Assembly: GCA_964270895.1 (NCBI GenBank)
Contig: OZ185437.1
Source of the DNA: Podarcis filfolensis
Taxonomy: Eukaryota
Length of the DNA stretch: 64,000 nucleotides
Direction: 5' to 3' (one strand)
The position numbers and the translations under genes are program-made. The notes under the pieces were generated by a model that searched no databases, was not told the origin of the DNA, and worked only from the letters and a program-made list of their open reading frames with translations. This document shows, piece after piece, positions 3,229 through 57,134 of the stretch (position 1 is its first letter; every line of letters begins with the position of its first letter).

Positions 3229-3352
3229 AGGGTGATGAGCTGGTGGTTCCCGAGACATCCGATAACAGCCGGAAGCAAATGGTCCGAAATATCAACAATA
3301 AACGCCGTTACTCATTCAGAGTGCCTGAGGAGGAGAGGATGCAACAGAGGAG
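3229..3352 (+). CDS. CDC42BPA: CDC42BPA coding exon (EGDELVVPETSDNSRKQMVRNINNKRRYSFRVPEEERMQQRR)
   Basis: Acceptor tctttcctag, donor GTCGGT at 3353; 124 nt, phase 1 to 2; lies within ORF 3195..3401. Confidence 0.95.
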
Positions 3353-4624
3353 GTCGGTATTCAACCTGTACTTGTCTTCTGTACATGCCTGTAGGCCCTG
3401 AAGACTTGTTTGTCTGCTGTCAATGTAGTTTTTTGGTTTGTTAGAACAGACATTTGTCTCTCTTCCCTTACATTTACTCTTTGTATATACTTTGTATAAA
3501 CACCAATCTAAAAGATTTAGTCCATTTAAAATTAAATCCTTGTGCAAAACAATTACTGTAATTTTCTGAATGCATGCCTCCATGTACTGTATATATGTAC
3601 ATTTGCGTGTGCGTGTGTGTGGATATACTGTATATATGAAGACTGATAATAAAATTTTTTACAAAAGAGGATTACATTACTAATTATGCATACGTATTAC
3701 TTTCAAAGTCTAGTACTTGCTGTTGTACTTTTTGGCAATGCTCATCCCATACTCTGTAACATTCCTCAGTGTTTAGATGTTCTTTATTTAATTGTCCCCT
3801 TGCGTGGCTTCTACGTAACAAATGGCTCACCTTGGAAAATGGTGTCTTGGGGTATATGAAAAAACTACAAACCTTTCTGAATATTAAGAAAATGTTTTCA
3901 GTAAGCACAAGACTGATATTTCAGTGTTTCTGGCCAAGTGTTCTTTCCATCCATAGACATTTACATGTAACTGCAGGAAAGACATATGTAAAGAACAGAA
4001 CTTCTTCTCAAATTGCCAAACTTTTCACTGGTAAAGGTAGCTAGATCTGCTTTTCTTTCTGTAAAGCTATTATAGCAGCACTTATTGTATGATTGGCTAG
4101 TTTTATGCTTTCTGCTTTTCAAAGATGCAGAGAACTCTTAAAGCATTTAGAATGGCACCTTCCTTTACAAACTCTTAAAGTTATTGTGACAGTTAAATAT
4201 GAAGGGTAGTGCAATATTCTTCTAATTCTTCTTCTTCTTCTTCTTTTTTCTTCTGTCCTTCACCTCTGCCTCCATCTTTGCAGTGCCAGGTCACCACTGA
4301 GCCCGCAACTGCACCTTTTCTTGAATGTTGTCTCAACTCCCTCTCTGAGTCTCAGTAGCCCTATGGACTTTTTACGGGCATGGGCTTTTAAGGCTTTAAA
4401 CCAAACTTCTGTTCTTCCCGACCCTTTCCCCTTTCATCAGGCTGAGAGCTGGCATAGAATCAACACCAGAAGTTAAAGTTACCCTCCTTTGAAACCTGGC
4501 CAGATATTTTTTTTTATTTATGTTTTAAAGTAACTTATATGAATATGTATGTAAATATATATTTCACCATTTTTACGAATATCCTCATGGACAAAATACC
4601 TGACCTGGCTATCCTCTCTTGCAG

Positions 4625-4742
4625 GGAGATGCTACGAGATCCAGAAATGAGAAATAAATTAATTTCTAATCCAACTAACTTTAACCACATAGCACACATG
4701 GGCCCAGGAGATGGTATACAAATCCTCAAAGATCTACCTATG
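4625..4742 (+). CDS. CDC42BPA: CDC42BPA CRIB-domain exon ([39 protein letters not shown])
   Basis: Acceptor ctctcttgcag, donor GTAAGT at 4743; 118 nt, phase 2 to 0; canonical CRIB motif [14 protein letters not shown]. Confidence 0.97.
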
Positions 4743-7700
4743 GTAAGTATATGAGAGTGTGTCCACACATAGATGTTATTGTTCTATATAGTAGATAAAA
4801 TGAACATATAGGCATTAAATTGTGATATAAATTGGAGTTGAACAGTTAGAAGGTTTTAATGAAATAAAAGGTGACTTTCATGGGCAGGGGCTTGAAAGTG
4901 ATAAAAATAGAGAAATACAAATCTTAGGAACATAGGAAGCTGTCTTAAGTCCTTTTCCCATCTTGCCAACTTGTCTGTCCTGCCTAGATGTGACGTTCCA
5001 GGTTCTCACACAATAGGTGCTTGGAAAGACCACTTCCTAAAATAAGTTTAACTAGAGATACCACAAGGTGAACCTGTCACTGGCAGTGCCCAAGTTTACT
5101 TCCCATAAAGGTTAACGTTTAACAGTTAAATGTCAATGGCTACATCTGTTGGACACACCAGTTCCACAGTTACGTTAATTAATGGATACAGATAAGGAAG
5201 TCATTCCACACAGTAACCTCATAGTAGCTTACGCAATAGTTCTTGAATAGTTACAACCATTGGTGAAATGCAGAAATCAGGCTACCTGCCCCTCCCATTT
5301 TTTTAATTGTTTGGGGGGGTGCTTTGGTTGGGGAAATTTTTTTTAAGGCTGGTCTGCTTCTTAGTCTGTGTTGTATTTGTTTGGTGGGTGTAGGTGTTTT
5401 ACCTGTTGTTGGGGTGGGGGGGTGGGCTCTGAGCATTGACCGTATCTGCCTATGAAACGTGACCACAACAGTTTCTTAGATTTCTAAATGTGTCCTGGGT
5501 CCCAAAAGGGTGAGTCGCCCTGAAGTTCAGTATTCAGCAAAATAACAGGCTGGGCCAAGTTCTTGCTTCTGTCTGCAGGGTACACAAGTGTCCCACCAGT
5601 TTTTTGTTTCTTCTCCAGATCTTCATGTTATCTGTTCTTCCCTGCTGTATATACAAAAGCATTCTGTTTTCTTTTCCTGCATATTTTTCTAAATTATTTG
5701 AGCTATACAAGAGGACATGAAAGAAGAGAGAATCACGGCAGGTGCTAAGAAACAGTTCACTGTTTATTTTCTCATATGTGCAGTCAGCAAAATTCACAGC
5801 CCAGGATTTATCTGTATTAAGGATTACCCTTTCCTGTGGTCTTCCCTCATGATATATACCAGACACAGAGTCCTCTTCCTCATATTTTCATGATTCTGTA
5901 GGTTTCAAGCATCCCCTGCCAACATAGTAAATGACAGCTCTCCCCACATAGGGTTGCTGTGCTGATTTTCCCTGTTAAAAATTTGCCATCATTCTAACTA
6001 AACAAGCAAAAGAGGATCCTATTCAAATGCTTGCAGGGACCTATTAGTAAATTATGTTACTTCCTTGGGTCCCTACAATTTTTTTTCTATTAAACTTCAG
6101 TAAAAATTAAACATTGTGCCTGATTTATCAGTATGCAAAGACACTATTTCTGTATACTAACCAAGGTATGTTCATCAATTTTTTTGAAGCTAATGGCTTT
6201 TAAAATGAATCAACTGCAGCAGATATTTCCATTTTTCCAACAACAACAAAATTAAGCTATTTAGTGCTTTATCAGAGGTGGGAACCTCCAGCCCACAGGT
6301 CAAACGTTGCCCACCAGGACTCCCTATTGGTCCCATAAGGCCATTTTCAAGAAGCCACCTCCATGCTATGTGTGAGGCAGGTAAGGGCAGAACATCAAAG
6401 GAACAACTGGGGACCCAAAGCTCTCGACTGTTCCTTTGTTCAAGCAAGGTGTGCAGTTTAAAGGAGACACACAGAGGGGGATGTTTGAAGGCATGTTCCC
6501 ATCGCATCAGCTGCTGGAACATGTCTTGCTCAAGGCATTCAAACTTGGGAAGCATGAAGGAGCAAGGTGGGGGTGCCCTCCAAGTACATGGGAGCCTGCC
6601 TCCAATCTCCTCCCCCTTCACTTTTCCTACAAGCCTCTGTGGCTTGAAGGACAAACAGAAGGGGGAGGATGTCTGAAAGCCCTTTATAAACATCCCTGCC
6701 CAAGGATATTTAAAGAAGGGCTGTTTGAAAGCCCCATGGTTTGCTTTGAAGTCCTGACAATTGGGGCTTCAAAGAGAGGCATCACCTGAGGTCACTGATG
6801 TCAGGTGATAGGCTGGTGGGTGGCCCTGCCCACCTGTCAACTTCAGCCAAAAAAGGATCCTGAGCCCTGTGGTATGTGAATAAGCCATTGTTTGAAGTTG
6901 ACTTATTATGAAACTTTCCAGAGTTTGTTTTAATGAAATGCTACACCGAGGTTCTGTAAAAGTGAAACTAAACCCCATGGAAGTCATCATCCACGTGCAC
7001 AGGAAGAGGAGGGGAAATTGTGTGAGCCCGATTCATTACTCAGGCTTGTTCAGGCTCATCTGCACAGCACTGAACCATGGTTTAGTATTACATGCAAACA
7101 AAGCCAGTGTGTAATGTGATACACCGTTTTCCTCCCTGATGAGACATACAACTCTGGTGATGGTCCATCTTCCTGTTTGTGTATATGCAAATTATTATTC
7201 AATTATTATTGAATAATTGGGCTCCATGGTAGCAGCAAGTAGGAAGCAAGAGTTCTTCAATAAAGTATATTAAAATTAACAGCTGGTCCTTAAGCAAAAT
7301 CTCCTACAGGATTTTCCTCTTATATGGAAAACACTGAAATTAGCACATGATTTCATTTGAGGGTACATGTAGGGAAACTGATGTGTTTGTGAATGCTCTA
7401 GTAAAAAAGGGTGTACATTCAGGGTTGTCCCCCCCCCCCCCCCCGGAGTATCTAGATGTTTGGATGACTGGTACATGAAGGAGGATAGAGCCAAAAACAT
7501 TAGTAACTCCTCCCCATACTGTGTTTCCTTGCAATCAAATGTTTGCAGTTGTTTCGTTTATTAATAAGAAAATGGGAGTAGGGTTTTGCCACCAGCTATA
7601 TTTTTTCCTTTGTCTGAAGAGTACCATGCTAGGGAAGGTAGGCTTGGATTTTATATTGCCATATTTTTATTCTAGTATAGCTGTCCCCAGCACACTGAGT

Positions 7701-9264
7701 GCGGGATGTATTCTAGTGCACCATTTGGAAACAGGGCTGTTATTCCCAGTGGTGGGGATGCCTACTGAAAGTGGCGCTTCTTAGGAAGATTAGCTGCATC
7801 AAGATATGTGAGATCATTGTATGTTTGCAAGAGATGATAATGAAAATTGCTCTTAATTTGTCTGACTGTTTTAGTCCTATGATCATCAGTCACGTTGAGT
7901 TCAGTCAGACTTGCTTCTCTGTAGACATGTATAGCATTTCACTGTTAATTTTGTGTCAGATCTTCGGTCTCTTCGGGTTACGTTCCATTCACTTCTTTGT
8001 TACAAATTAATTCAGGGAAAGTTTATTTTTCTAAGATAGTTTTAAAGGCAGTGGTGTTCTTTTTTTAAGAAAAAGAAAAACCCCATACACTTAAGCATCT
8101 AGCTTTTTACCACTAGATGGAGCTGATTTTGCAGGGTAAACTGTTATTAAATTGTGTATTGAATAAATGACGTTTTAAAATTCTACAAGGCTTACAGTAC
8201 ATTTATATACAGATACAGGAATACATAAGGAATATCAGGAGCTGCTTTATACTGAGTTGGACATTTGGTCTATCTAGCTCAGTATTGTTTACACAGATTG
8301 GCAGCAGTTATCCAGGGTTTTAGTTTACCTGTGTGGAAAAAGATTTATTTTCTTTCTTTTTGTGATGTTCACAATTTTTCTTTTTGTTAACTAAGGGGAA
8401 TGAAAGGAAAGGGAAAAAGAGAAAAAGCTATAGATTCATAAATGTAAACGTTATTCAAAAACTAGACCACATAAATCTGGGAGGTGTACACAATGGATAA
8501 TAATACAACAACTACTTTGTCATCTAACCTGCAACAAAAAAGGTACATGAAGTCCTTGACTTGGCCAAGGCCTAACCCATGACTAACTTAAATCTGTAGG
8601 TTTAAAAAGGGTCTGTTCTGAGTATGACTTAGATACCACACAATTTTTTCCATTGTACAGTAGAATATGTACATCACATATTCTCATGGGATTGAATTGG
8701 CTGTGTGAGAATGTCTGGTCCTTTGTATACCATGTACGTTAAGCCCACTTGTGTGTGATGGGACTGTGAAAGTAAAGCCTCTGCAGCCTGACGTACCTGT
8801 GCTACCCAAGGTGTGATGCCATCATAGAAGTCACTAGTAACACATCATGCCTTTTTCAGTCCATTTGCTAATTCAAGCAAGCTGTGAGCAGGTGAGTTTC
8901 CAGTGAAGCTCTACTCTGAGTAGCACAGGTGGTAGGGGGAAGGAGGGGACAGGATTTGATCAAAGGTGAGCCAGGAGGGAAGAATTAACTGTGATGTTTG
9001 TAGTACATGTCAATGTCTGAAGGCAGGAGAAGGGCATATGCTAGACTGCAGTTCACATGCCACTGCTCACTCTCTTCAAAATAGTAATGAGTACTTTGGA
9101 GAGCGAGATTCTAAAATACGATGGTGGTTGTGGTTGTGTATGTACAAAAGCAGTCTCTGGAAATGGGTCAGGCAGTATGCAAATGATAAATATGCCTGTT
9201 GATTTACAAGCCTCGTTTTTAATGAGCATATGCTCCATGATTTGTATTCCTAAGATCACAGATA

Positions 9265-9355
9265 CCCTCCCTCATTATCTCTTTCTCTTTCTCTGTCTCT
9301 TTCTCTGTCTGTCTCTCTATCTCTCTCTGTCTCGCTCTCTGTATCTCTCGTCTTT
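9265..9355 (+). repeat. (CT/TCTG)-rich polypyrimidine tract upstream of the cassette exon
   Basis: Directly visible; no AG between 9262 and 9358. Confidence 0.9.
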
Positions 9356-9360
9356 GATAG

Positions 9361-9546
9361 CCAAGCTCCCCTTATCCACCCTCTCATCATCACTCCCATC
9401 TCATCTCTTCTCCAAGCAACTTCGAGCACATCTATCACATGACTGTTAACTCAGCAGAAAATTTCCTCTCCCGTGATTCCATAAACCGTGCATATTCCCC
9501 ACCTCTACGCTCTGTCCCTCGTACACCAGCCTTTATGAATATAAGG
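9361..9546 (+). CDS. CDC42BPA: CDC42BPA alternative cassette exon with second CRIB-like motif (PSSPYPPSHHHSHLISSPSNFEHIYHMTVNSAENFLSRDSINRAYSPPLRSVPRTPAFMNIR)
   Basis: Follows a ~95-nt pyrimidine tract ending tctttgatAG (9360); donor GTATGA at 9547. 186 nt = 62 codons, open, phase 0/0 like the host intron. Contains ISxPxxFxHxxH. Resembles a 62-aa insert recalled from a human MRCK-alpha isoform. Confidence 0.85.
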
Positions 9547-11474
9547 GTATGAATTGTTCAGCCAGGTGTTCCTGCTACTAACACTGTGTGGTGTTCCTTC
9601 TTTTTTGGCCTGGCTAATATCTGGCAAGATTTCAGCTTTGCAGTTGGCTTCATTTGTGTCTGGATCTTTCTTTTTTTCCTTTTGCTTCCCTTCAGTTACA
9701 TTTCTCTGTAACCCCCAAATGAGGGGTGTGAACTTGGGCAACTACCAAAGTAGAAGTCCTTGACCTTTTCCCAAAATTACTAAGTATTCAAAACAACTTT
9801 TGCAATCCCATTAAAATTCTCCAGAGATTTTCACATGAGTTTCCCAGTTCAAAGGACCCACAGTGAGGAGACTGGCGTCCTAAAACATGTTTGGTACATT
9901 GCGCATGCCTCCCCACAGTCCCCTTGTCCACTGAGATTAGTAGATTCATAGGGGACTTGAAGGAAGCCCAGTGGTGCATCTCAACAGGATTTATGTGATA
10001 ATTATGGAAAGCTTGTTGCTGTATCCAAAGACTTACACCTGTGGCTTTTCTTTGCAACAGACAAGACTTAAACAGTTGGATGGAAATTTGGCTGCATGCC
10101 AAATGACAAAATGAGGCCTATGTATTAGAGATAACCTTGCGTATAGTGTTGGAATTCTGCATTTCAGTATGGTAATAGAATTCTGTCCACTTAATAGAAA
10201 CATCAATCTGATCTGATTTACATGACTTCTGCCACATTGCCCATGTACATACATGCTGCTGTACAGGGTCCTATAACAAAAAGAAAACCCTGTGCCCTGC
10301 CTTGAGGAGTTTGCAGTCTACATTCCAACTTTGTGGAGGCAGCAGAGGGAAGAAAGGAGAGATGGAGGCATATATATGTGCAGACGCAGTCTTACATACC
10401 TTCTTTTTTCTTGAAATCTTAGTCTTTTTCTTGAAATGTTAGGTGAAGGCAAAGAGCTTAAGGCAGAGACTTACCTGGGAGATGGAATTTGAGCTGGGAT
10501 TGAAAGAGAGGACAGAGAACTCCTGCGCCTTGTGGATTTGGGAAGGGAAGGGAGGTCCTGATAAAGCAGGACTGGAGAAATGGGGGCGCCATTTAAGGGA
10601 GCAGGAGGCTGTGCCTCTTCTTATTTCTAGTTAGGTCTGTAGAAGTAGGCTCTTGCTCTGTCAAGTGCTTCCTAAAAATGTTTTTTTATTTGTGGCCTAA
10701 CAATCCTGGTCTAAAGGGAGGTGTCTCACAAATCTCTCCAATCCCGAACAGAACAATAAGGCTGAGCAAGTGGCTGAGCTTCAGGTTTGTTACCATTTGT
10801 GTCCTTTCACATGTAGCTCATCTAATTCTCCTGCCAGCAAGATTGTTTACTGAACTGAATGACCCCCACTGAATGACCCAACTATATTTTCCAAGAAAGC
10901 ATCTTACATTTGGTGGCTGTTAAGTAAATTGCTTCTCTTTTCTGAAGTTAAAAGTTCTACGCAGTGAGCTGTAATCAATTTTATATTTTCTACCTTTCAA
11001 AAGAATGACATTTCAGTCCTGCTGACAGAAATGCAGGATCTATAAATTGTTATTATAAATAAAAATGTACTTTTTCCATTGAGATGTATTTGCTCTGAAG
11101 ATTCGTTTGTTTACCTCCTTGGTCTGTTAAAAAAATAACATCGGTATTTTAAAGGAGATGCTATAGGGTTAAGCTTCACTACCATTTCCTAACTAGTTTT
11201 GAGCAACCATGGATTTTCTTTTTGTGCATGACGTGAAAAGCTTCTCTTTCTCAGTTCTCTGATCTTAGCAGTGAGTTGTACAAATGTTTAGGAAAAGAGC
11301 AGTGAGGCATTTGCTTTGAGGTAAAGAGCACCTAAGAATTAGATGGACTCTGCCTTTTAATCAAATAAAATGAGTGTATCTTTCTCATATACCTGCAGCT
11401 GTGTTAGTTGCCTCCACCTTATTTTAAAATTGATTGTGATCATTAGATCTACTTCCCCAAATAGGGTTACTCAG

Positions 11475-12240
11475 CCCTTAAAGGACCAGGTTCATAGCCT
11501 GGGGGTCACTTTGGACCCACAGCTGTCCATAGAGGTGCAAGTCAACTCTGTGTCCAGGGTGGCTGTCTACCAACTCCATCTAGTACACCAGCTGAGACCC
11601 TACCTGCCCACAGACTGTCTCGCCAGAGTGGCACATGCTCTGCTTATTTTGCACTTGGACTACTACAATGCACTCTATGTGGGGCTACTTTTGAAGGTGA
11701 CTCGGAAACTACAATTAATCCAGAATGTGGCTGCCAGACTGGGAGTGGCTGCCGTGACCGTCTAACACCAATCCGAAAAGATCTACATTGGCTCCCTGTA
11801 CGTTTCCAAGCACAATTCAAAATATTGGTGCTGACCTTTAAAGCCCTAAATGACCTCAGCCCAGTATACCTGAAGGAGCATCTCCACCTCCATCACTTAG
11901 CCTAGACACTGAGGTCCAGCTCCAAGGACCTTCTGGTGATTCCCTCATTGCAAGAAATGAGGTTACAGGGAACCAAGCAGAAGAGCGTCTTCTTGGTAGT
12001 CGCATGCACCCTGTGGAACACCTGCCCATCAGATGTCAGAGTTAAACAACTCTATAACCTTTCATAGACATTTGGAGGCAGCCCTCTTTCGGGACACTTT
12101 TAATGCTTGGTGGGTTTTCTCTCCCCCCACTCCCTCTGTACTTTTGTTGGAAGCCACACAGAGTGGTTTGGGCAACCCAGTCAGATGGGCAATGTATAAG
12201 AAAAAAATTGTTGTTGTCATCATCATCATCACCATCATAA
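11475..12240 (+). mobile_element. 5'-truncated L2-clade LINE (RT C-terminus and 3'UTR)
   Basis: Translates PLKDQVHSLGVTLDPQLS...LDYYNALYVGLLLKVTRKLQLIQNVAARL (L2-type LDYCNxLxxG...KLQxxQNxAAR), then degenerates and ends in a (CAT)n-like tail. Boundaries approximate. Confidence 0.85.
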
Positions 12241-13734
12241 ATGCCCATCGTTCTGAGTGAAGGGGATGGGCTTGCAAGCTTCTTCTTTTACTCTACATAT
12301 CAGTGCACATTGACTCTTCCCCTCATCCTCCAGAGTTCATATTAATAAAGTCTAAAATCATTCCTCCTTGCAATATCCCAAATTGTTATGTTGCCCATAT
12401 AATTCAATAGGAGCCATTAGAAACTGAACCAGCTCTCAGTACATTCTATATCCCTGTCCTGGATTCTGTTACTTGACTTTTAAGTTAGTGTGCTTTCCAA
12501 ATAAGTGTGTTTGTTATCTGTTGACTAAACTGTCAGATTCCTGTTTTCTGACATGAAAGATTGGCATTTCCAGTCTCTCTTCTGCACTCAGCTTTGGAAA
12601 AATGAGACACAGTTAGGAAGTATCTAAGCAACAGATGGACATCAGGATGCTGAATTTCACGTGTCCTGATCAGTACCTATTTTCATTTTCATTCCATTAG
12701 TATTTGTTTTGTGTAGCCAGTGTTGCAGCTTCTGTGAGTGAATATTGTTGCAGCCTGTATCAGATTCACTGCTTACTGGCTAGCTTGGGTGGCTAGTGAA
12801 TCACTTGAAAGCTTTCTAGCAGTCAACTTCATCCTGTAACCATACTTTGTTTTCTCCTACCAGGAGGATACCCAGAGTTGTTGATCACATTGTTAATGTG
12901 ACTTGGGGAAGCAAGGAACTGACCTTTAATCTTTTAACTGAGAAGTGGGATCATAAACATACAGTGCAGAGGTGGCAAACAAACTGTTCAGTGAGAGAAG
13001 CAGAAAACAATAATTAAGATTACTTAGCTCTTTATGCCTGTCAGATGCTAATCGGTACATTGCATAAACAGAAAAACAGAAAAGCAATAGATTAATGGTA
13101 GAAGCATGCATTATAGAATCATGTGTTACATGCAACAACAACAACAGAATGCTATATCACCAACTCAAACTCAGAAAAAACCTTTTATTTCATACATCCT
13201 TAAAATATGCCATTTATTCCAATTTTGTACAGGGGATAGTTGAATATAATCAAATAAATAATAATATAATCAAATAAGCTGTGGCTATCTGTTAAAGACC
13301 AACCAAGCAATAAGCCCAAAGGAGTTTAATGAATTACAAGAGTGCATTTCTGAAATTTGAATGCACGCAGAGTACTAATTTTAGATGTGCTTGTTACTGA
13401 TGTGTTGAAAAACAAAACAAAAATGCAATGAATGCAATTCCTGAAAAATTATTCTTATTTTAATTTTATTTATTTAATATATTTTTATCCTGCCTCTCAA
13501 AAAAATAGCTTCACTAAGTGGCAGTCATGTAACTTGAAACTCACAGTAACCTTTAAATGGGTTTTTAAGTACTGTATTGTCACTTCACAGTACACAGGGT
13601 TTATATGTTTACAAGTACACAAAGCAATAAGCCAATCAGTGCAATAATAAAACACAATATAATTGAAATACTCAGGAGGTATTGAGATAAGCAGCAAATA
13701 ACAAGTGTATACTTTAAGGCCCGTGTAAAAATTA

Positions 13735-14245
13735 TTATTTTTATTTATTAAATTTGTATACAGCCCTTCATCCAGATATCTCAGGGCAGTTCACAGCATA
13801 AAAATACAGAATAAAACCACAAAATACAAAGTAAAAACAAGGGGAAAATGAAACAAACCGGGCGCCCGGTGAGCCTCCCTAGGGAGAGCATTCCACAAAA
13901 GAGGAACCACTGCAGAAAAGGCCGGTTCTTGGGCTGCCCCCCTCCTGACCTCTTGAGGCGGTAGCACATAAAGAAGAGCCTCAGATGATGCTCACAGGGT
14001 CCAGGTCAGTTCATATGGGGAGAGGCAATCCTTGAGGCATTGCAGTCCTGAGCCATTTAAGGCACTTTGAACTGGGAAGCTAATTAGAACAACCCACCGG
14101 AGTCGGGCCAGGAATGGTGTAATATGATCAAACCATCATGCACCAGTGAGCAGTCTGGCCACCAAATTCTGCACCAGCTGAAGTTTCTGAGCCATCTTCA
14201 GAGGCAGCCTTCTTCAGGGGTAGCATATTGCAGTAATCTAAACTT
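13735..14245 (-). mobile_element. Degenerate L2-clade LINE 3' fragment, antisense
   Basis: Reverse complement shares motifs and the 3' end (ctgagat..ggatgaaggg..aaatttaataaa) with the 41030-41580 copy. Confidence 0.7.
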
Positions 14246-14823
14246 GTGGGGATTGTTAGTGTCTGAATCATTCCAGCCCTCAGAAAGGGTGGTCCTGGGG
14301 ATAAATTTAGTGCCTATTCTTTTTCTACCCAATGTGTTTCAGAAAAGTCCTTGAAAGTGAAAGAATCTTGACATGTAGTAAAGAGAGAGGGAGAACTGGG
14401 AGATGCAAAAATCCATGCTGATAGTAAATAATATCTAGTAAATAATAGTAAATAGCATCTAGTCTCTGGCTGCATTGCTTAGCTGTCTGCATCCATGGGG
14501 ACTGTTAACATTGAAGACATTACACTAGGGTGTGTGATAGGTTTCAAATTCCTAAGAAAATATCAGAATTTAGGAGAAAACCTTGCATATTTGGCTACTT
14601 ACTGCCACATACAAATTAGCGTTTTGCAGTTGCTGCTGACGGCATTCTGTGTGGTTCCATCCACAGTGCTTATTTATAGAAATTAAGCTCTGCAGTCTTG
14701 CCTACTTGCCGTCTAGATAACCTGGAGACCAAGGCATTGTTTGACCATTGCTTGGACTGTAGTTTGATAACCTTGGTATTTCCACTGTAAATGATTTTGC
14801 TTCTTTCCTGTTTCTCTTTGCAG

Positions 14824-14941
14824 AACCTTCGACCTCAGGAAAGTCGGACCATGTTTAGCGGTTCTGTCAGTATTCCATCAATCACAAAATCCCGCACTGA
14901 ACCCGGACGCTCCATGAGTGCTAGCAGTGGTTTGGCGGCAA
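14824..14941 (+). CDS. CDC42BPA: CDC42BPA coding exon (NLRPQESRTMFSGSVSIPSITKSRTEPGRSMSASSGLAA)
   Basis: Acceptor tctctttgcag, donor GTAAGT at 14942; 118 nt, phase 0 to 1. Confidence 0.95.
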
Positions 14942-15766: not shown

Positions 15767-15924
15767 GATCATCTGCACAAAATGGCAGTGCTTTGCGGAG
15801 GGAATTCTCTGGAGGTAGCTATGGAGCAAAGCGTCAGCCAATGGCATCCCCTTCGGATGGCTCCTTGTCCTCTGGCGGTTTGGACCAAGGCAGTGATGCA
15901 CCAGCGAGGGACTATGAGCGAGAG
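15767..15924 (+). CDS. CDC42BPA: CDC42BPA penultimate coding exon (RSSAQNGSALRREFSGGSYGAKRQPMASPSDGSLSSGGLDQGSDAPARDYERE)
   Basis: Acceptor actttcctag, donor GTGGGT at 15925; 158 nt, phase 1 to 0. Confidence 0.93.
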
Positions 15925-17551
15925 GTGGGTATGACGTGGGAGGGGTGGGGTGGCAAGGGAAGCCTCTCCACAGAGCCCAAGTTCTTTACTCTGCTGTGCT
16001 CAAACAAAAGGATAGAGAAGTGTTGCACAGGACAGTGACCCCAGGAAGAATAACCACAGGTTTTACTGAAGGAAAAAGTATTTTCCTATTTAAAATATGA
16101 TAAAAATCCCCAAGGCAGGAGTCTGTATGACTTGAAACACTGTGGATTTAGATAATAAACTTTTTAGCAGCACTTGTAGATTTTTCTTCCTTTGGCACAA
16201 TAAGTGCTAGTGGTGCATCAAAGCGAATTACTACTGCCTCTAATAAGTAACCAAGCAGGGCATGAATCTAGGCAAAATGAAGTTTTTAGTCTCACTGATT
16301 TCACTGGAAATATTTTAACATGTGCTTCACTTTCCCACTGAAATCAATTTGACTTTTGTCCATATTCTGTTATACTAGTTTTGCAATAAGGAAATCTATA
16401 TTCTGAATTTTTACTGAATGTTGGTTCACATTAGTTTGTAGAATTTGACAGGGGCAGGAAGTAACTGGCCATAAAGGCAGCTGGTTGACGAAGGAGGAAT
16501 ACTGGCACTGTCCTGCCCAGTCCACAAGCAGCTTTGTTATCCTTAAGGTCAGTTGATGCAGTCAAGGATGCATTCACACAGCAGAGTTCTCTATGAATCA
16601 AGCTTCCTGTGAATACAGCCACTCCTTCTCAGCAGTGGCCGCTTTGATTGTGACAGACACTGCTGTCCTTGGCAGCAGTTTGCACAATGAAAGCGATGTT
16701 TTCATTAAGGTATTTTTTGCAGCATGTTTTGCAAAAGATCTACAGTAATCCATATGAGTTGTTCATGTCAGAACAAATAACACAGAGTGATACCCTTTGT
16801 ACAAAACCGCTGCCAAATCTCCTGCAAGTCATGAAACAAGAGAAAAAAACAAACGGAAGGGGGAAAACATTTAAACCAATTAGAAGCAACAAGAATATTA
16901 ATCACCTTTCCAAGTTCATCCAACATTTGCATTAATATCTGGCAGGTGTCTGTCTGGTATTGTGCTAATGATCTATGTGCAAATGCATCTTTGGGAGCAT
17001 TGCTTGCATGGAGGCAAAATGTGAATCAGCCCTGAATCAATGGAGGCCAGTTCATTTGAGCAGATGGGGCGCTGCCCCACCAATCTCAGTCTCAGCTAGC
17101 CCACACTTCCCTGTCTTCTTCCTTACAAGGAGTCCAGGTGGTGGCACTGCCTACTAACTTTCCTCCTCCTTGTACAACTCCACAAGGGAGGATGGGGACA
17201 AAACTGGAGTCTGGCTGCACCTCCTGTTGGTCTCTCTCCCGTATGCCCTACCAACCCCAAGTGGACACTGGCCAGCTCTGCCCTCAGTGGTGCACTTCAA
17301 GAAAATAACTTCTGGTGTTTTGTTCCCTCCCAGCCACTGTACTTGGGAGGCAATATGAGATGCATCCTCTTGAGAAGTTAGAGCAGTTGGTATCACTCCC
17401 TCGTGTGCTAAGGCGTGGGGTGTCGGGACAGGGCAGTCACTTGGTTCCAGACAGATCTTGTCCTCGGTGTCCCTTTCCCCTTGCTCCCACCCAGGCCTTC
17501 CTCTTCTGCTCCCGCTCACTGATATGTTCTCTTGCATTTTTTGGGCTGCAG

Positions 17552-17683
17552 GACTCTGACTCTCCAAGGCATTCGACAGCTTCTAACAGCTCCAACCTGA
17601 GCAGTCCTCCCAGCCCCATCTCTCCTCACAAGACCAAGAGCCTCTCCCTGGAGAGCTCTGACCACGCAAGCTGGGACACATGA
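17552..17683 (+). CDS. CDC42BPA: CDC42BPA last coding exon (DSDSPRHSTASNSSNLSSPPSPISPHKTKSLSLESSDHASWDT*)
   Basis: Acceptor ttttttgggctgcag ends at 17551; 132 nt ending in TGA 17681-17683; matches recalled MRCK-alpha C-terminus. Confidence 0.95.
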   Translation, partial: DSDSPRHSTASNSSNLSSPPSPISPHKTKSLSLESSDHASWDT

Positions 17684-20600
17684 ACTGCTTCAGCACTCAG
17701 ATTTTACATCTCAGCAGCTTACTGTCCCCATGACTCTCCGTTTGCTCTCACTGTCATCGCCCCCCAGCTTCCCTCCAAAAGCAGACTAGGGGAGGGAGGG
17801 GAGGAAGAGAGCATATCTTGTCTTCTCTGACACAAGCAGCGTAAGCTCCCCCCGATTCAAAAGTAGCAGCAAACAAGAGAAAACCTTGAGGAGGGCAGAG
17901 TGGGGGAGGGGTTGGTATACAAGAGATATTGGTATATTTGTATTAGTATCTATTTTATTTCATAGGGTTACAGCTGTTTCCATTTTTATGGGTATATTCC
18001 ACACCATGCCACTGTTCCAAACAAAACATAGTAGTGTTAGACTGACCAAAACAGAATCTGAAAGAGAGAACCAGATTTTGCTTTGAGGCACACAGTATCT
18101 CATTGTATTTTTTCAAGAGTTAGCACAGCAACACCCACCCATCTCTGGTGATGGGGCAAAATTTGCCCTGCAGGGGCAGATAACGCACGCTTTCAGCAAC
18201 CACTCTATTTGAATGTCAATCTGATTGTTGCCAGCAAATCCTTATTGATTTAAAAAGAAATGATGCATATTTTACTACAGTAGAGTTTAAGTAAATACGC
18301 AAAATTAAGAGTTAGTACATATGTATATAATAAAAGAAGAAGCATTGTGATGCAGCGAAAGATGGATTCCTATTTAAGAGATCCTTTAATTTAAGAAGAC
18401 TTGTGTTGTTCCCTTTTTCATACTAAATAATCTATGGATTGAGGATGTGATCTGGATATAGAACATGGCACTGGATAAAAACAGCCTGGGGGGAGATTCC
18501 ATCCTCACAATGTTCTCTGTAACATTACCTTCTTGTCAGTAGATGAACTAAAGCCATAATTCTCACTTTTTAACTATATCTCCCTCTTCTACTGTCTGCT
18601 TCACTGTACAAGCAAAACTCAAGATCTGCTGGTCGACAAGCCTGAAGTGAGCTCAAGGGCAGTTCTGCAGAGAATTGGTATTCAGCCCCAAGCAAAACTG
18701 AAGTAAATGCAGCCAAAGCCAGTGCAAAGAGATAACTAGTTTTGGGACGGTTGGAGCTGGGTTTCCAAACCCATCTGGCCAATTAATACCAGCAACCACT
18801 AGCTTGTAAGTTGACTTTCCAAATTTTAGTGATCAGCCTACATCTGGCAAATTCAAACAGCGCTGGTCTTGAAATAGAATCTTTTAAATATATAACTTGC
18901 TGCTCTAGCTCACTGAAGGCCATAACGTGCTGTTGGTCTTCAGAATTTGCTAGAACGCCGGGTGGTTCAGGACGCCTATTCCGAAGATGTTTATTATGTC
19001 ATCCCTGCTCTCCCACCGGGCCTGACCTAGTGTGTTTAGTGCTATTATTGCCGTGAAATACTGTGACGGTTGGATCCCACAGAGAAGCACTTGGCAGGGC
19101 AAAGCATTCCTCTCTGGAGAGAGCAGACAGTGGAGGTCCATCACCACCTAAATAAACAGTAGCAAGCAGTGCAACCTGCAAATGGAGGGCAAGAACAAAA
19201 CAATAGAAAAAGCCCACTTGCCTCCTCCTTTTCCTTCTTGAACAAGTTGAGTGCGGTTTGCGATTTGAGACTAGATGAATGTGATTTTTCTAATCCTTGG
19301 GATCATAACTACCTTTATGACGTGACCAAGCTCAAGCGGATAAGAGTTTGGATGGTGGTGTGTGTTGAATTTAGAATTCTAGTCTTCTGGGTTTTGGTAA
19401 CACTTCATGGCTATCATCAAACCATTCCAACCAAACAACAAAAGTGCAACTAATGGTGTTTCCCAGGTTCCCTCTGAAAAATGTCAGCTACCACCATACA
19501 AGGTACTGATTTAGAAGTACTCTGAGATACAGAGCGTTGTCTTTCATGATCTAGCTGTATTAAGTCTGCTAGTTGTTGGTTCTGTGTCTTCTTCTGCATT
19601 AAGTGGACTGCCACACCCCAAGCTACCATTTAGCTATTTTATACTGGGGGGAACAGTTGTGGGTGGGGGGGACACACAGCTTTTTTCTACTGCATATGGT
19701 GTCCTAATCCTGTCTGTGGAATTTGGCTTGTCAAGAATCTCCAAGTTGATGATGTGTGTTTTGTTGTCACAGGTATAAACAAGAGATTTGCAAATTGCAT
19801 TTCATAGCGGCCAGTTTTGACAGTTTTGCTGAGCAGGAAATTAGCATGTCTAAGAGCACAAGGACAGGTGTAGTTTAAAATCCATTGACTACTTCTTCAG
19901 CATTGGCTACTAAAAGGTTCTACTTCTCTTCCACCCTGTGATATTATCACTCATGCCCACCCACCGTTCTATACACTTGTGAAGAGATTGGACTTAGTTA
20001 TTTCTGAAATACAACTAGTGGGAAATAGGTTATCTGATTAAGGCTGCCAGGGCTTGAAATCCACAGTAGGCCCAAGCGATTATCCACTTCAGGAGTTACC
20101 TTAGACGTCCTTGCAAGGTCCTGTGGCAATTGATCTGTGCTCCATCTGAGAAAGAAAATTCTCACCTGTCTAGAATGAGAAGAAATTAGCATCCCAAGAG
20201 TTACATTTTATACGTTGGCCCATTTCACAAATTAAAAGTATTCTTCTTTTCATGCTGACCTAGGATGCATTCCTAGTACATTATGGACACATTTGAGCAT
20301 TGGCAGAATTGAAAACATATCTCTGAAATGGTTGGCTGGTGAAGTTAAGCTTTGCTGATAGGCATTGCTCAGTTTCCAGGCACACCTGATTACATTTCTC
20401 CAAGCACTTTCATAGTCTCTAGTTGAATCCTGACTCATCTGATGACACCTTTGTGTACATAGTTTGAGGCTATTATTTCCCTAACTGGACTAATTCAGAC
20501 ACCTCAGTCATTGCCTCTTTACACTTTTAGCCCATTTCTTGAGGCTCAATAAATCAGGTGTTGATTGTAAACGAACCTCAGATTGTACAGCTCCGTTATT

Positions 20601-30880: not shown

Positions 30881-32270
30881 CTGCAAAAATTGCAACAAAG
30901 GGACAAAAATGAATTAGAAAAGCTCCCACTTGCATCAGATTATGTAGATATGCAGAATATACTGAAACTAAGTCACAGCTATCATGAATGTCTGGCAGAG
31001 GATGCTACAAAGACTCCTGGGATTAGGTGGATTACACATCTCCTTGGGGAGGGAGGCAGGAGGAAAGAGAGAGAGAGATGCCAAAGAGTCACTACTTTGG
31101 ACAATGCACAACTACAAAGCTCGAGAAGTGTGGCCCCTTTCATGTAACATGTGATATAGTCAGGGGGTGAAACTGCGCTGCTCGCCCAACTACACGGACC
31201 AGCAACAGGTCACTTAACTGCCCTCTAGCTTCCAGAAAGGCTGGAGTTATTGAGCCAGCATCGTGGCCAAGTTAGTGGCCCAGAGTAGGGATGCCATTTA
31301 CAGGAGAGAAGGGCTGAGGAAGAAGAGAGCACCAATTGCACCATTGTTTTGGTGAAAATTTAGTTTAGCAACCAAAGGGTCAGGATTTAAGCGTGCATCT
31401 CAGATGGGAAGGCAAAGTGCAAATGTGGCAACATGTGCTTGAAAATACGGACGCCATACAGGCACACTTGTCGGAGCCGAGACCAGCTTCTGCCGACACA
31501 GAAAGAGGACTGCTGGAGGGGAAAAAGGACAGAGCAGCAACACGTCAGAGTGACAAAGCCTAGACCTACATACATCATGTACCCGGGAGTTTTGTTGTCT
31601 AGAGACCAAACTTTATACTCCCACTCAGTGACTTGCTGACAGCTGTTAAGGGTGTTTAATGGCCTCCTATGGGGCACGTCGGAATACCAGGCCAAATCCA
31701 TCTGCCAATCTGGCTGCAGTCAGACTTGCTTGTCCTCCCATTAACTTTCTAGCCCCTTGCTATATTTGGCTCCGATGCTCTTTTGTCCATGCTTCACCTC
31801 TCGTCCGACCTCTTGTTTACCCAGTACTTTTCTACCAGGCTTCAGCTGCTAGGATTGGCCCAAGTGAGAAGCCTATATTTGGGTGCTTATGCAACAAGAG
31901 GGGGACGCGTTTCTGATTGCTCATTCCAGGATGAGATGATCTCTTTTGCCAAGCTGGTCATCCTACACACAAGGTCACGCTGTCTGTCTGAAAGATGGTT
32001 TGCAGGTTAGCAAAGCCGGTGGGCTTTGGGGTCCCCAGTGCAGGTGGCTCCAATACTGAGATTTGCAGGACACAACCTGTAGCAAAACATTTTCTAGGGT
32101 GCCAACCATTCCCAAGCGATTGATTTCTGCACACAATACTTAGCATGGCCCCAACCTGTCCATTCAAAGGACCCCTCTCGCAAAATGGCCTGAAGAAGAG
32201 GCCCATGTCCTCTGGCTCTACCGATCTCCTTCCTCCACCTCCAAGCTGAAAAGGGGCCAGGTGACCATAC

Positions 32271-32412
32271 CTCGTTCCTTATCTCCTGGCTGAGTTCTTG
32301 GGCTTGATCCAGCGGGAACCCAGTCACCAGCTCCGTCGTCAGGACATGTGGGCTGCACAGCTCCTCCACCACGGCAGGGACATAGAAGAAGGGGTGGTCT
32401 TTGAGCAGCTCC
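32271..32412 (-). CDS. COQ8A: COQ8A coding exon 10 of 14 ([47 protein letters not shown])
   Basis: 142 nt, acceptor gcccctcag, donor GTATGG; phase 2 to 0. Confidence 0.96.
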
Positions 32413-32654
32413 CTGAGGGGCAACAGACAAAACGCTAAGAGCTGCCCAACCCCTGCAGGGGCCTGGGGTTTCTGCAATATCTGGGCTCAGCAGAGTTAAC
32501 GCCATTTTGCCCAAAAGCAGCCACTTGCTACTCTAGATTCTTCTCTGAGCCTCTTTCCCCTTGGTCCAACAGCATGCACAAGCCCAGGTGTTTGGGATAA
32601 AACCAGAATCCCTCACTGCAGCATCTGGCGGGGGCAGATCCCCATAAAACACAC

Positions 32655-38798: not shown

Positions 38799-38955
38799 NN
38801 NNNNNNNNNNNNNNNNNNNNNNNNNNNNNNNNNNNNNNNNNNNNNNNNNNNNNNNNNNNNNNNNNNNNNNNNNNNNNNNNNNNNNNNNNNNNNNNNNNNN
38901 NNNNNNNNNNNNNNNNNNNNNNNNNNNNNNNNNNNNNNNNNNNNNNNNNNNNNNN
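38799..38955. other. Assembly gap (157 N)
   Basis: Run of n; intronic in COQ8A, and no coding exon is missing across it. Confidence 1.
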
Positions 38956-56934: not shown

Positions 56935-57134
56935 NNNNNNNNNNNNNNNNNNNNNNNNNNNNNNNNNNNNNNNNNNNNNNNNNNNNNNNNNNNNNNNNNN
57001 NNNNNNNNNNNNNNNNNNNNNNNNNNNNNNNNNNNNNNNNNNNNNNNNNNNNNNNNNNNNNNNNNNNNNNNNNNNNNNNNNNNNNNNNNNNNNNNNNNNN
57101 NNNNNNNNNNNNNNNNNNNNNNNNNNNNNNNNNN
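56935..57134. other. Assembly gap (200 N)
   Basis: Run of n, flanked by L2 and SINE fragments; intronic in COQ8A. Confidence 1.

Follow-up and report, generated by a model that had tools for sequence, protein, structure and literature searches.

The 3' end of CDC42BPA and the exon within its 10-kb intron

The 64,000-nucleotide stretch of DNA analysed here, further referred to as the window, contains on its plus strand the last coding exons of a gene for which the named database matches are MRCK alpha (P0078, P0011, P0035, and P0039), while the MRCK-beta matches read GMQVLMDLPL/S... and are unlike the window. The protein encoded by exons 3229-3353, 4625-4742, and 14824-14941 is 100% identical to the open reading frame (ORF) of the sauropsid transcript contig L009, which is described below, and the flanking exons are assigned on these matches to the C-terminus of MRCK-alpha (CDC42BPA). 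The canonical Cdc42/Rac-binding (CRIB) exon of the gene is followed by an intron of 10,081 nt (4743-14823), and 4.6 kb into this intron lies the segment under study. It had been predicted as a stop-free stretch of 186 nt with AG/GT ends and phase 0/0 inside a 10-kb intron after the CRIB exon, and this is confirmed by its coordinates and by the phases of the flanking exons. The features of the locus are the following (the slash marks an exon boundary).

3229..3353, plus strand: constitutive CDC42BPA exon upstream of the CRIB exon; 89% identity to nt 1-118 of L009, amino acids 100% identical to the L009 ORF
4625..4742, plus strand: canonical CRIB exon of 39 codons, 91% identity to L009; CRIB core at 4662-4697; ends in phase 0 with ATG/GTAAGT
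9278..9349, plus strand: (TCTC)n-like pyrimidine tract before the cassette acceptor, a tandem repeat of period 4/12
9359..9360, plus strand: cassette acceptor AG, ctttgatAG/C, belonging to the in-frame TAG at 9358-9360
9361..9546, plus strand: cassette exon of 186 nt, 62 codons, phase 0/0, no stop; translation PSSPYPPSHHHSHLISSPSNFEHIYHMTVNSAENFLSRDSINRAYSPPLRSVPRTPAFMNIR
9400..9471, plus strand: near-invariant block of 24 residues, LISSPSNFEHIYHMTVNSAENFLS, in which the second CRIB core (9403-9438) is followed by 11 conserved residues, MTVNSAENFLS
9547..9552, plus strand: cassette donor GTATGA, AGG/GTATGA, with the GT at 9547-9548 and a TGA at 9550-9552 that closes the frame on read-through
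14824..14941, plus strand: next constitutive exon by L009 alignment, NLRPQESRTMFSGSVSIPSITKSRTEPGRSMSASSGLAA plus 1 nt; starts with NLRPQESRTMFSGS... in phase 0
15767..15924, plus strand: penultimate coding exon by L009 alignment, -SSAQNGSALRREFSGGSYGAKRQPM...DYERE
17552..17683, plus strand: last coding exon, DSDSPRHSTASNSS...SWDT; stop TGA at 17681-17683, then the 3' untranslated region (3' UTR)

The open frame of the cassette is tightly delimited by the two in-frame stops, TAG and TGA, that overlap its splice sites. Since phase 0 holds both at the end of the exon 4625-4742 and at the start of the exon at 14824, inclusion of the segment results in a 62-residue insert in frame. The exon had been described as missing from the ORF list, which fits with the list giving a single ORF for this frame (9439..9552, 37 aa), with an internal Met as its start; an exact look-up of this 37-residue ORF found nothing on record. 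Upstream of the acceptor there is an AG-exclusion zone of 97 nt, which is 87% pyrimidine, and the corresponding AG-free zones span 85 and 108 nt in the other two sauropsid genomes and 50 nt in frog. The polypyrimidine tract of the cassette is formed by a (TCTC)n / TCTCTGTCTCTC microsatellite at 9278-9349 (72 nt), which is far longer than in the other sauropsid genomes.

Several observations concern the surroundings of these exons. The 3' UTR (17684-17988, plus strand) aligns to the transcript of the other sauropsid with about 88% identity up to 17739 and 75% identity over 17908-17988, and the comparison suggests conserved 3' UTR elements after the CDC42BPA stop. Farther downstream the ORF 32094-32477 on the minus strand matches the ABC1 atypical kinase-like domain (PF03109) with 30.4 bits (cut-off 22.9) and probably represents one exon of a gene similar to COQ8A/ADCK3, convergent with CDC42BPA and located downstream of its 3' end; this agrees with the gene order at human 1q42, where COQ8A/ADCK3 follows the CDC42BPA 3' end convergently. 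The GC content climbs to 0.48-0.51 at 30-36 kb, and the window contains two runs of N at 38799-38955 (157 bases) and 56935-57134 (200 bases).

The second CRIB-type motif and its relation to the consensus

In this intron an open frame flanked by AG and GT is no more than chance would produce, as 97 other open segments of 186 nt or longer with AG..GT borders and phase 0/0 are present, whereas the CRIB content of the segment does exceed chance. Across all six reading frames of the 64-kb window the core pattern I[ST]xPx(2-4)FxHxxH has just two occurrences, one at 4662 and one at 9403, with 0.007 expected per shuffled window. The second motif, ISSPSNFEHIYHMT, possesses the Ile, Ser, Pro, Phe, and both His residues of the consensus I-S-x-P-x(2-4)-F-x-H-x(2)-H-V-G and carries Met in place of Val, as does the canonical MRCK CRIB, while all six orthologues have Thr at the position of the final Gly. 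The retention of I-S-x-P, F, and two His with Gly changed to Thr had been part of the original prediction, and it is seen both in the translation and in the six-orthologue alignment. The proposed spacing of about 38 residues, on the other hand, has to be corrected: the two motifs start 41 residues apart (counted from I13 in the 39-codon exon to I15 in the cassette), and the start-to-start distance is 42 in frog and in the other sauropsid.

When the Pfam PBD profile (PF00786) was applied to single exons, the cassette exon scored 17.8 bits and the canonical CRIB exon 19.7 bits, both below the gathering score of 21.3 because they are short pieces. Natural proteins that bear the insert contain two PBD stretches and pass the 21.3 cut-off, with 24.5 bits for the sauropsid P0010 and 31.9 bits for the frog P0008, and in the latter the cassette motif scores better than the first CRIB. 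In the search of solved structures a single cassette peptide produced only noise (His-tag and Schlafen matches), and with the cassette profile the best matches were the PAK4 CRIB peptides 2ov2_I and 5upk_A, which are weak (E 0.2). AlphaFold2 modelling of the natural two-CRIB tail (P0010:1-150) predicted no fold (pLDDT 55, pTM 0.18), and a CRIB region that lacks its partner would be expected to look unstructured in a single-chain prediction.

Orthologous exons, transcripts and selection

The exon was followed through transcripts, gene models, and genomic contigs of other species; the exons of the window were searched one by one, and the natural proteins P0010, P0002, and P0008 stood in for the spliced product. 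A word search with the 62-residue peptide gave no match among proteins of 34-108 residues. The exhaustive protein search with the cassette peptide retrieved bullfrog gene models, a ranid genomic ORF (P0004), and a sauropsid genomic ORF (P0007). Four further candidates were dropped, namely P0001, a Ser/Thr/Pro-rich repeat protein of 1920 residues that is a compositional match, and P0003, P0005, and P0006, multi-CRIB repeat proteins that match via the generic CRIB core only. The last three are unnamed proteins of 788, 504, and 964 aa, respectively, with 4 to 7 CRIB cores of the type IGPPTNFQHVxHVG and spacers rich in Gln, Glu, and Trp.

In the bullfrog models PIO38374.1 and PIO38372.1 (P0002 and P0008) the canonical CRIB exon, the cassette, and the next exon occur in this order; an exact look-up of the bullfrog model found nothing on record. 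A word search from the frog tail led to P0010, a 242-residue ORF on L009, which is a 1228-nt Logan contig of run SRR28499600. L009 aligns colinearly to the window in six blocks (3236-3353, 4623-4742, 9367-9546, 14823-14940, 15767-15925, and 17550-17739) with 83-91% identity. Because it is intronless and colinear and its blocks abut at the predicted exon boundaries, L009 represents a spliced sauropsid mRNA that includes the cassette. Its cassette is identical to the genomic copy in contigs L011 and L012, where it is bounded by AG and GT.

A search with the cassette part of P0010 alone found a titi-monkey (Plecturocebus cupreus) protein annotated as "MRCK alpha, partial" (P0078), with 78% identity over the cassette, and in a mammalian transcript ORF (P0058) the sequence runs from the internal Met of the cassette through NPRPQESR... 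to the C-terminus. P0078 was seen as a gene model and P0058 as a transcript ORF. The titi-monkey model places the true cassette amid Alu-like translated segments (...SRFVTQARVQQHDLGSLQHPPPRFKRFSC...), and these surroundings, unlike the exon that they enclose, have the look of an artefact of annotation. The order and position of the cassette, between the CRIB exon and the exon beginning N-x-R-x-Q-E/D-S-R, are common to L009/P0010, P0002/P0008, and P0058.

At the genomic level the match to the window is limited to 9334-9619 in the contigs L001 (6 kb) and L011 (2.8 kb) of the two other sauropsids and in the frog contig L010 (1 kb), so that conservation spans the exon and about 30-70 nt of its flanks. 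Four genomes keep the acceptor AG/C and the donor AGG/GTA[TC]G. The acceptor context ctttgatAG/C is identical in L001, L011, and L012, and frog has ctttatcAG/C. The exon lengths in the four genomes are 186, 186, 189, and 186 nt (62, 62, 63, and 62 codons), all divisible by three. Reading frame and splice sites are retained in all four.

The dN/dS of the cassette is 0.25-0.31 among the window, two other sauropsids, and frog, and 0.14 between those two sauropsids; the differences between the window and L011 are distributed over the three codon positions as 5/11/20. For the 62-codon exon the value of about 0.25 indicates purifying selection. The neighbouring 212 constitutive codons show a dN/dS of 0.01 at a dS of 0.76, and the cassette is thus constrained, yet it evolves far faster than its neighbours (0.25 versus 0.01, a 25-fold difference). 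In the alignment of the reptile, two other sauropsids, a primate, and two frogs, 30 of the 62 cassette residues are invariant from frog to primate. The block LIS[ST]P[SI]NFEH[IV]YHMTVNSAE[NK]FLS is identical in 21 of its 24 columns, while the Pro/His-rich head and the tail are the variable parts. Ser/Thr-Pro sites at residues 3-4, 17-18, and 55-56 are kept in most or all orthologues.

According to these data the exon is protein-coding, is under purifying selection, and is at least as old as tetrapods. The principal claim of the original prediction, a real coding CDC42BPA exon whose inclusion puts a second CRIB-type motif directly behind the canonical CRIB exon, is supported by L009, P0002/P0008, P0078, P0058, and the conservation described. 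The opposite reading, a chance open segment or decaying pseudo-exon with an accidental CRIB resemblance, could draw on the abundance of comparable open segments in the same intron and on the blank word search with the 62-residue peptide. However, that search reflects its length limit, since only candidates of 34-108 residues were compared, and the CRIB pattern is far too rare in shuffled sequence. In addition, the cross-species conservation is an island of the exon and its short flanks, the splice sites, frame, and length class are maintained in four genomes, the dN/dS is 0.25, and mRNAs of another sauropsid and of a mammal include the exon. This reading retains hardly any probability and is already refuted by the splicing of L009, the splice-site conservation, the dN/dS, and the orthologue alignment.

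Whether such a coding exon is skipped or always included is a separate question. The exon is probably alternative, because in MRCK-alpha of fish and shark DLPM is followed immediately by N-x-R-x-Q-E/D. Exon-skipped forms were found in shark and pipefish (P0012, P0036, and P0011), and the reference mammalian MRCK-alpha isoforms presumably also join DLPM directly to the next exon. The long CU-rich tract together with the 97-nt AG-free zone and the moderate donor suggests regulated, possibly tissue-specific, inclusion of the cassette; a moderate donor, a CU-rich tract, and a long AG-free zone are features commonly tied to regulated exons. If the exon were instead constitutive in this lineage, every MRCK-alpha mRNA would carry both CRIB motifs, and the only sauropsid transcript recovered, L009, indeed includes the exon, with no sauropsid transcript bearing a DLPM/NLRPQESR junction among the matches. 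The searches, however, were seeded with insert-containing queries and were length-limited, which left sauropsid transcripts that skip the exon no chance of a good rank. Skipped forms do exist in shark and teleosts, the cassette has a dN/dS 25-fold higher than its neighbours, the donor AGG/GTATGA is moderate, and the long CU-rich AG-free tract before the exon is of a kind typical of regulated exons. We therefore regard constitutive inclusion as quite improbable.

Apart from the skipped forms, the fish-like MRCK-alpha transcript ORFs P0017, P0037, and P0040 contain at the same junction an insert that has no CRIB motif (DLPM/VGAP..RPRPHPRPHP../NVRVQESR). This fish insert is Pro/His-rich and resembles the head of the tetrapod cassette, PSSPYPPSHHHSH.

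Proposed function and comparison with known systems

Taken as a whole, the segment 9361-9546 is very probably the orthologue of a CDC42BPA 3' exon of at least tetrapod age which adds a second CRIB-type motif to MRCK-alpha, with a cassette character, a GTPase site, and regulated inclusion as its proposed attributes. MRCK-alpha is recruited by GTP-bound Cdc42/Rac via its C-terminal CRIB. Inclusion of the exon between 4625-4742 and the exon at 14824 would add 62 residues in frame and place the second CRIB-type motif 41 residues after the first. This second motif may act as a working Rho-family GTPase site, and its inclusion would then affect the identity or the number of the GTP-bound Cdc42/Rac-type proteins that bring the kinase to membranes. 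The motif is considered a putative GTPase site because the CRIB contact residues, together with the 11-residue extension, are what has stayed invariant for about 350 My, and binding of a Rho-family GTPase is the function that these residues point to. A two-CRIB MRCK-alpha isoform could accordingly differ from the one-CRIB form in the recruiting GTPases or in the strength of recruitment. That the long isoform has a function can be argued from the conservation of the exon, its splice sites, and the 24-residue core across tetrapods.

Two features are contrary to GTPase binding: Thr stands for Gly in every orthologue, and the conserved extension is unlike other CRIBs. They fit a different reading of the same exon, in which it is coding but the CRIB-like motif does not bind a GTPase and the insert is a spacer or a regulatory linker. 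Such a linker could alter the presentation of the first CRIB or of the C-terminal tail, could engage another partner via HMTVNSAExFLS, or could be controlled via the Ser/Thr-Pro sites. The replacement of the consensus Gly after the second His in six of six orthologues agrees with this reading, as do the 11 conserved residues beyond the CRIB core, which resemble neither the canonical MRCK nor the PAK continuation, the conservation of the three Ser/Thr-Pro sites in most or all orthologues, and the lack of a predicted fold (pLDDT 55). Against it, all the other CRIB contact positions (I, S, P, F, and both His) are invariant over about 350 My, the PBD profile rates the motif as well as the proven first CRIB, and better in frog, and among solved structures its closest relatives are CRIB peptides in complex with Rac3 or Cdc42. 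On balance the linker reading appears unlikely, although it keeps an appreciable share of the probability.

Similarly doubtful is the proposal that the second motif represents a separate module, conserved for 350 My and composed of the Thr-for-Gly core plus TVNSAExFLS, which might bind a different Rho-family partner or allow two GTPases to be held at once in a tissue-regulated manner. If this were true, the partner of the long isoform might be, for example, a TC10/Chp-type GTPase. Compared with these alternatives, a second CRIB-type motif serving as a Rho-family GTPase site remains the preferred reading of the exon.

The exon itself is already known and is not a discovery, since it is already part of public transcripts and of the gene models deposited for frog and primate. 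The original prediction was right in calling it probably not new to biology: it is present in the bullfrog and titi-monkey models and in a mammalian transcript. Its annotation value is small and consists in adding the exon to the CDC42BPA models of the species. The second CRIB is conserved and appears little studied as to its function. Human MRCK-alpha reportedly undergoes 3' alternative splicing that alters its GTPase-binding region, as is said to have been described by Tan, Cheong, Lim, and Leung (reportedly Gene 2003;304:107), and we take the mammalian isoforms with an insert of about 62 residues to be products of this splicing. In a review of the MRCK kinases from 2014 a single CRIB is given per protein and the splicing is stated never to have been systematically characterised. 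The literature search did not find a description of a second CRIB in MRCK-alpha or a characterisation of such a module.

The closest known counterpart is the mammalian MRCK-alpha insert (P0078 and P0058), which shares with the exon of the window its position before N-x-RPQESR..., its length (61-63 residues), and its core ISSP[SI]NFEHIYHMTVNSAE[NK]FLS; the window and the primate segment are 75% identical, and the only differences of the mammalian insert are those of ordinary divergence, found in the head rich in Pro and His and in the tail. In the bullfrog (Aquarana catesbeiana) the gene AB205_0135800, annotated as "CRIB domain-containing protein", shows the same exon order and two Pfam PBD stretches, its cassette is 64-67% identical to that of the window, and the splice sites are kept in the ranid contig L010. 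The bullfrog protein differs in its tail, SSEPAHPTSSSYSSPSLSTTPANHR, and the model is a fragment that reads into apparently non-coding sequence.

Within the same gene, the canonical MRCK-alpha CRIB (4662-4697) shares with the cassette the string I-S-x-P-x-N-F-x-H-I-x-H-M, including the MRCK-typical Met, and the exons bearing the two motifs are short, compatible in phase, and separated by a few kb. The likeness is consistent with an origin of the cassette by an old duplication of the canonical CRIB exon. The two nevertheless differ in the Thr that replaces Gly and in the continuation TVNSAENFLS, BLASTP aligns only 18 residues of them (E 0.002), and the dN/dS of 0.25 in the cassette contrasts with 0 in the canonical CRIB exon.

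Outside the MRCK family, the CRIB of PAK4, a group II PAK with structures in complex with Rac3 (2OV2) and Cdc42 (5UPK), reads ISAPSNFEH and agrees with ISSPSNFEH of the cassette at 8 of 9 positions. It differs in continuing with RVHTGFD, which retains the consensus Gly, and in belonging to an unrelated context, the N-terminal regulatory region of PAK, and the match is weak (E 0.2). Two consecutive CRIB domains have been described in the Dictyostelium gelsolin-related protein GnrC (PMC8847673). In a comparison made from this published description, GnrC is like the two-CRIB MRCK-alpha in having tandem CRIB motifs and unlike it in being an unrelated protein in which the CRIBs are N-terminal and constitutive (PMC8847673).
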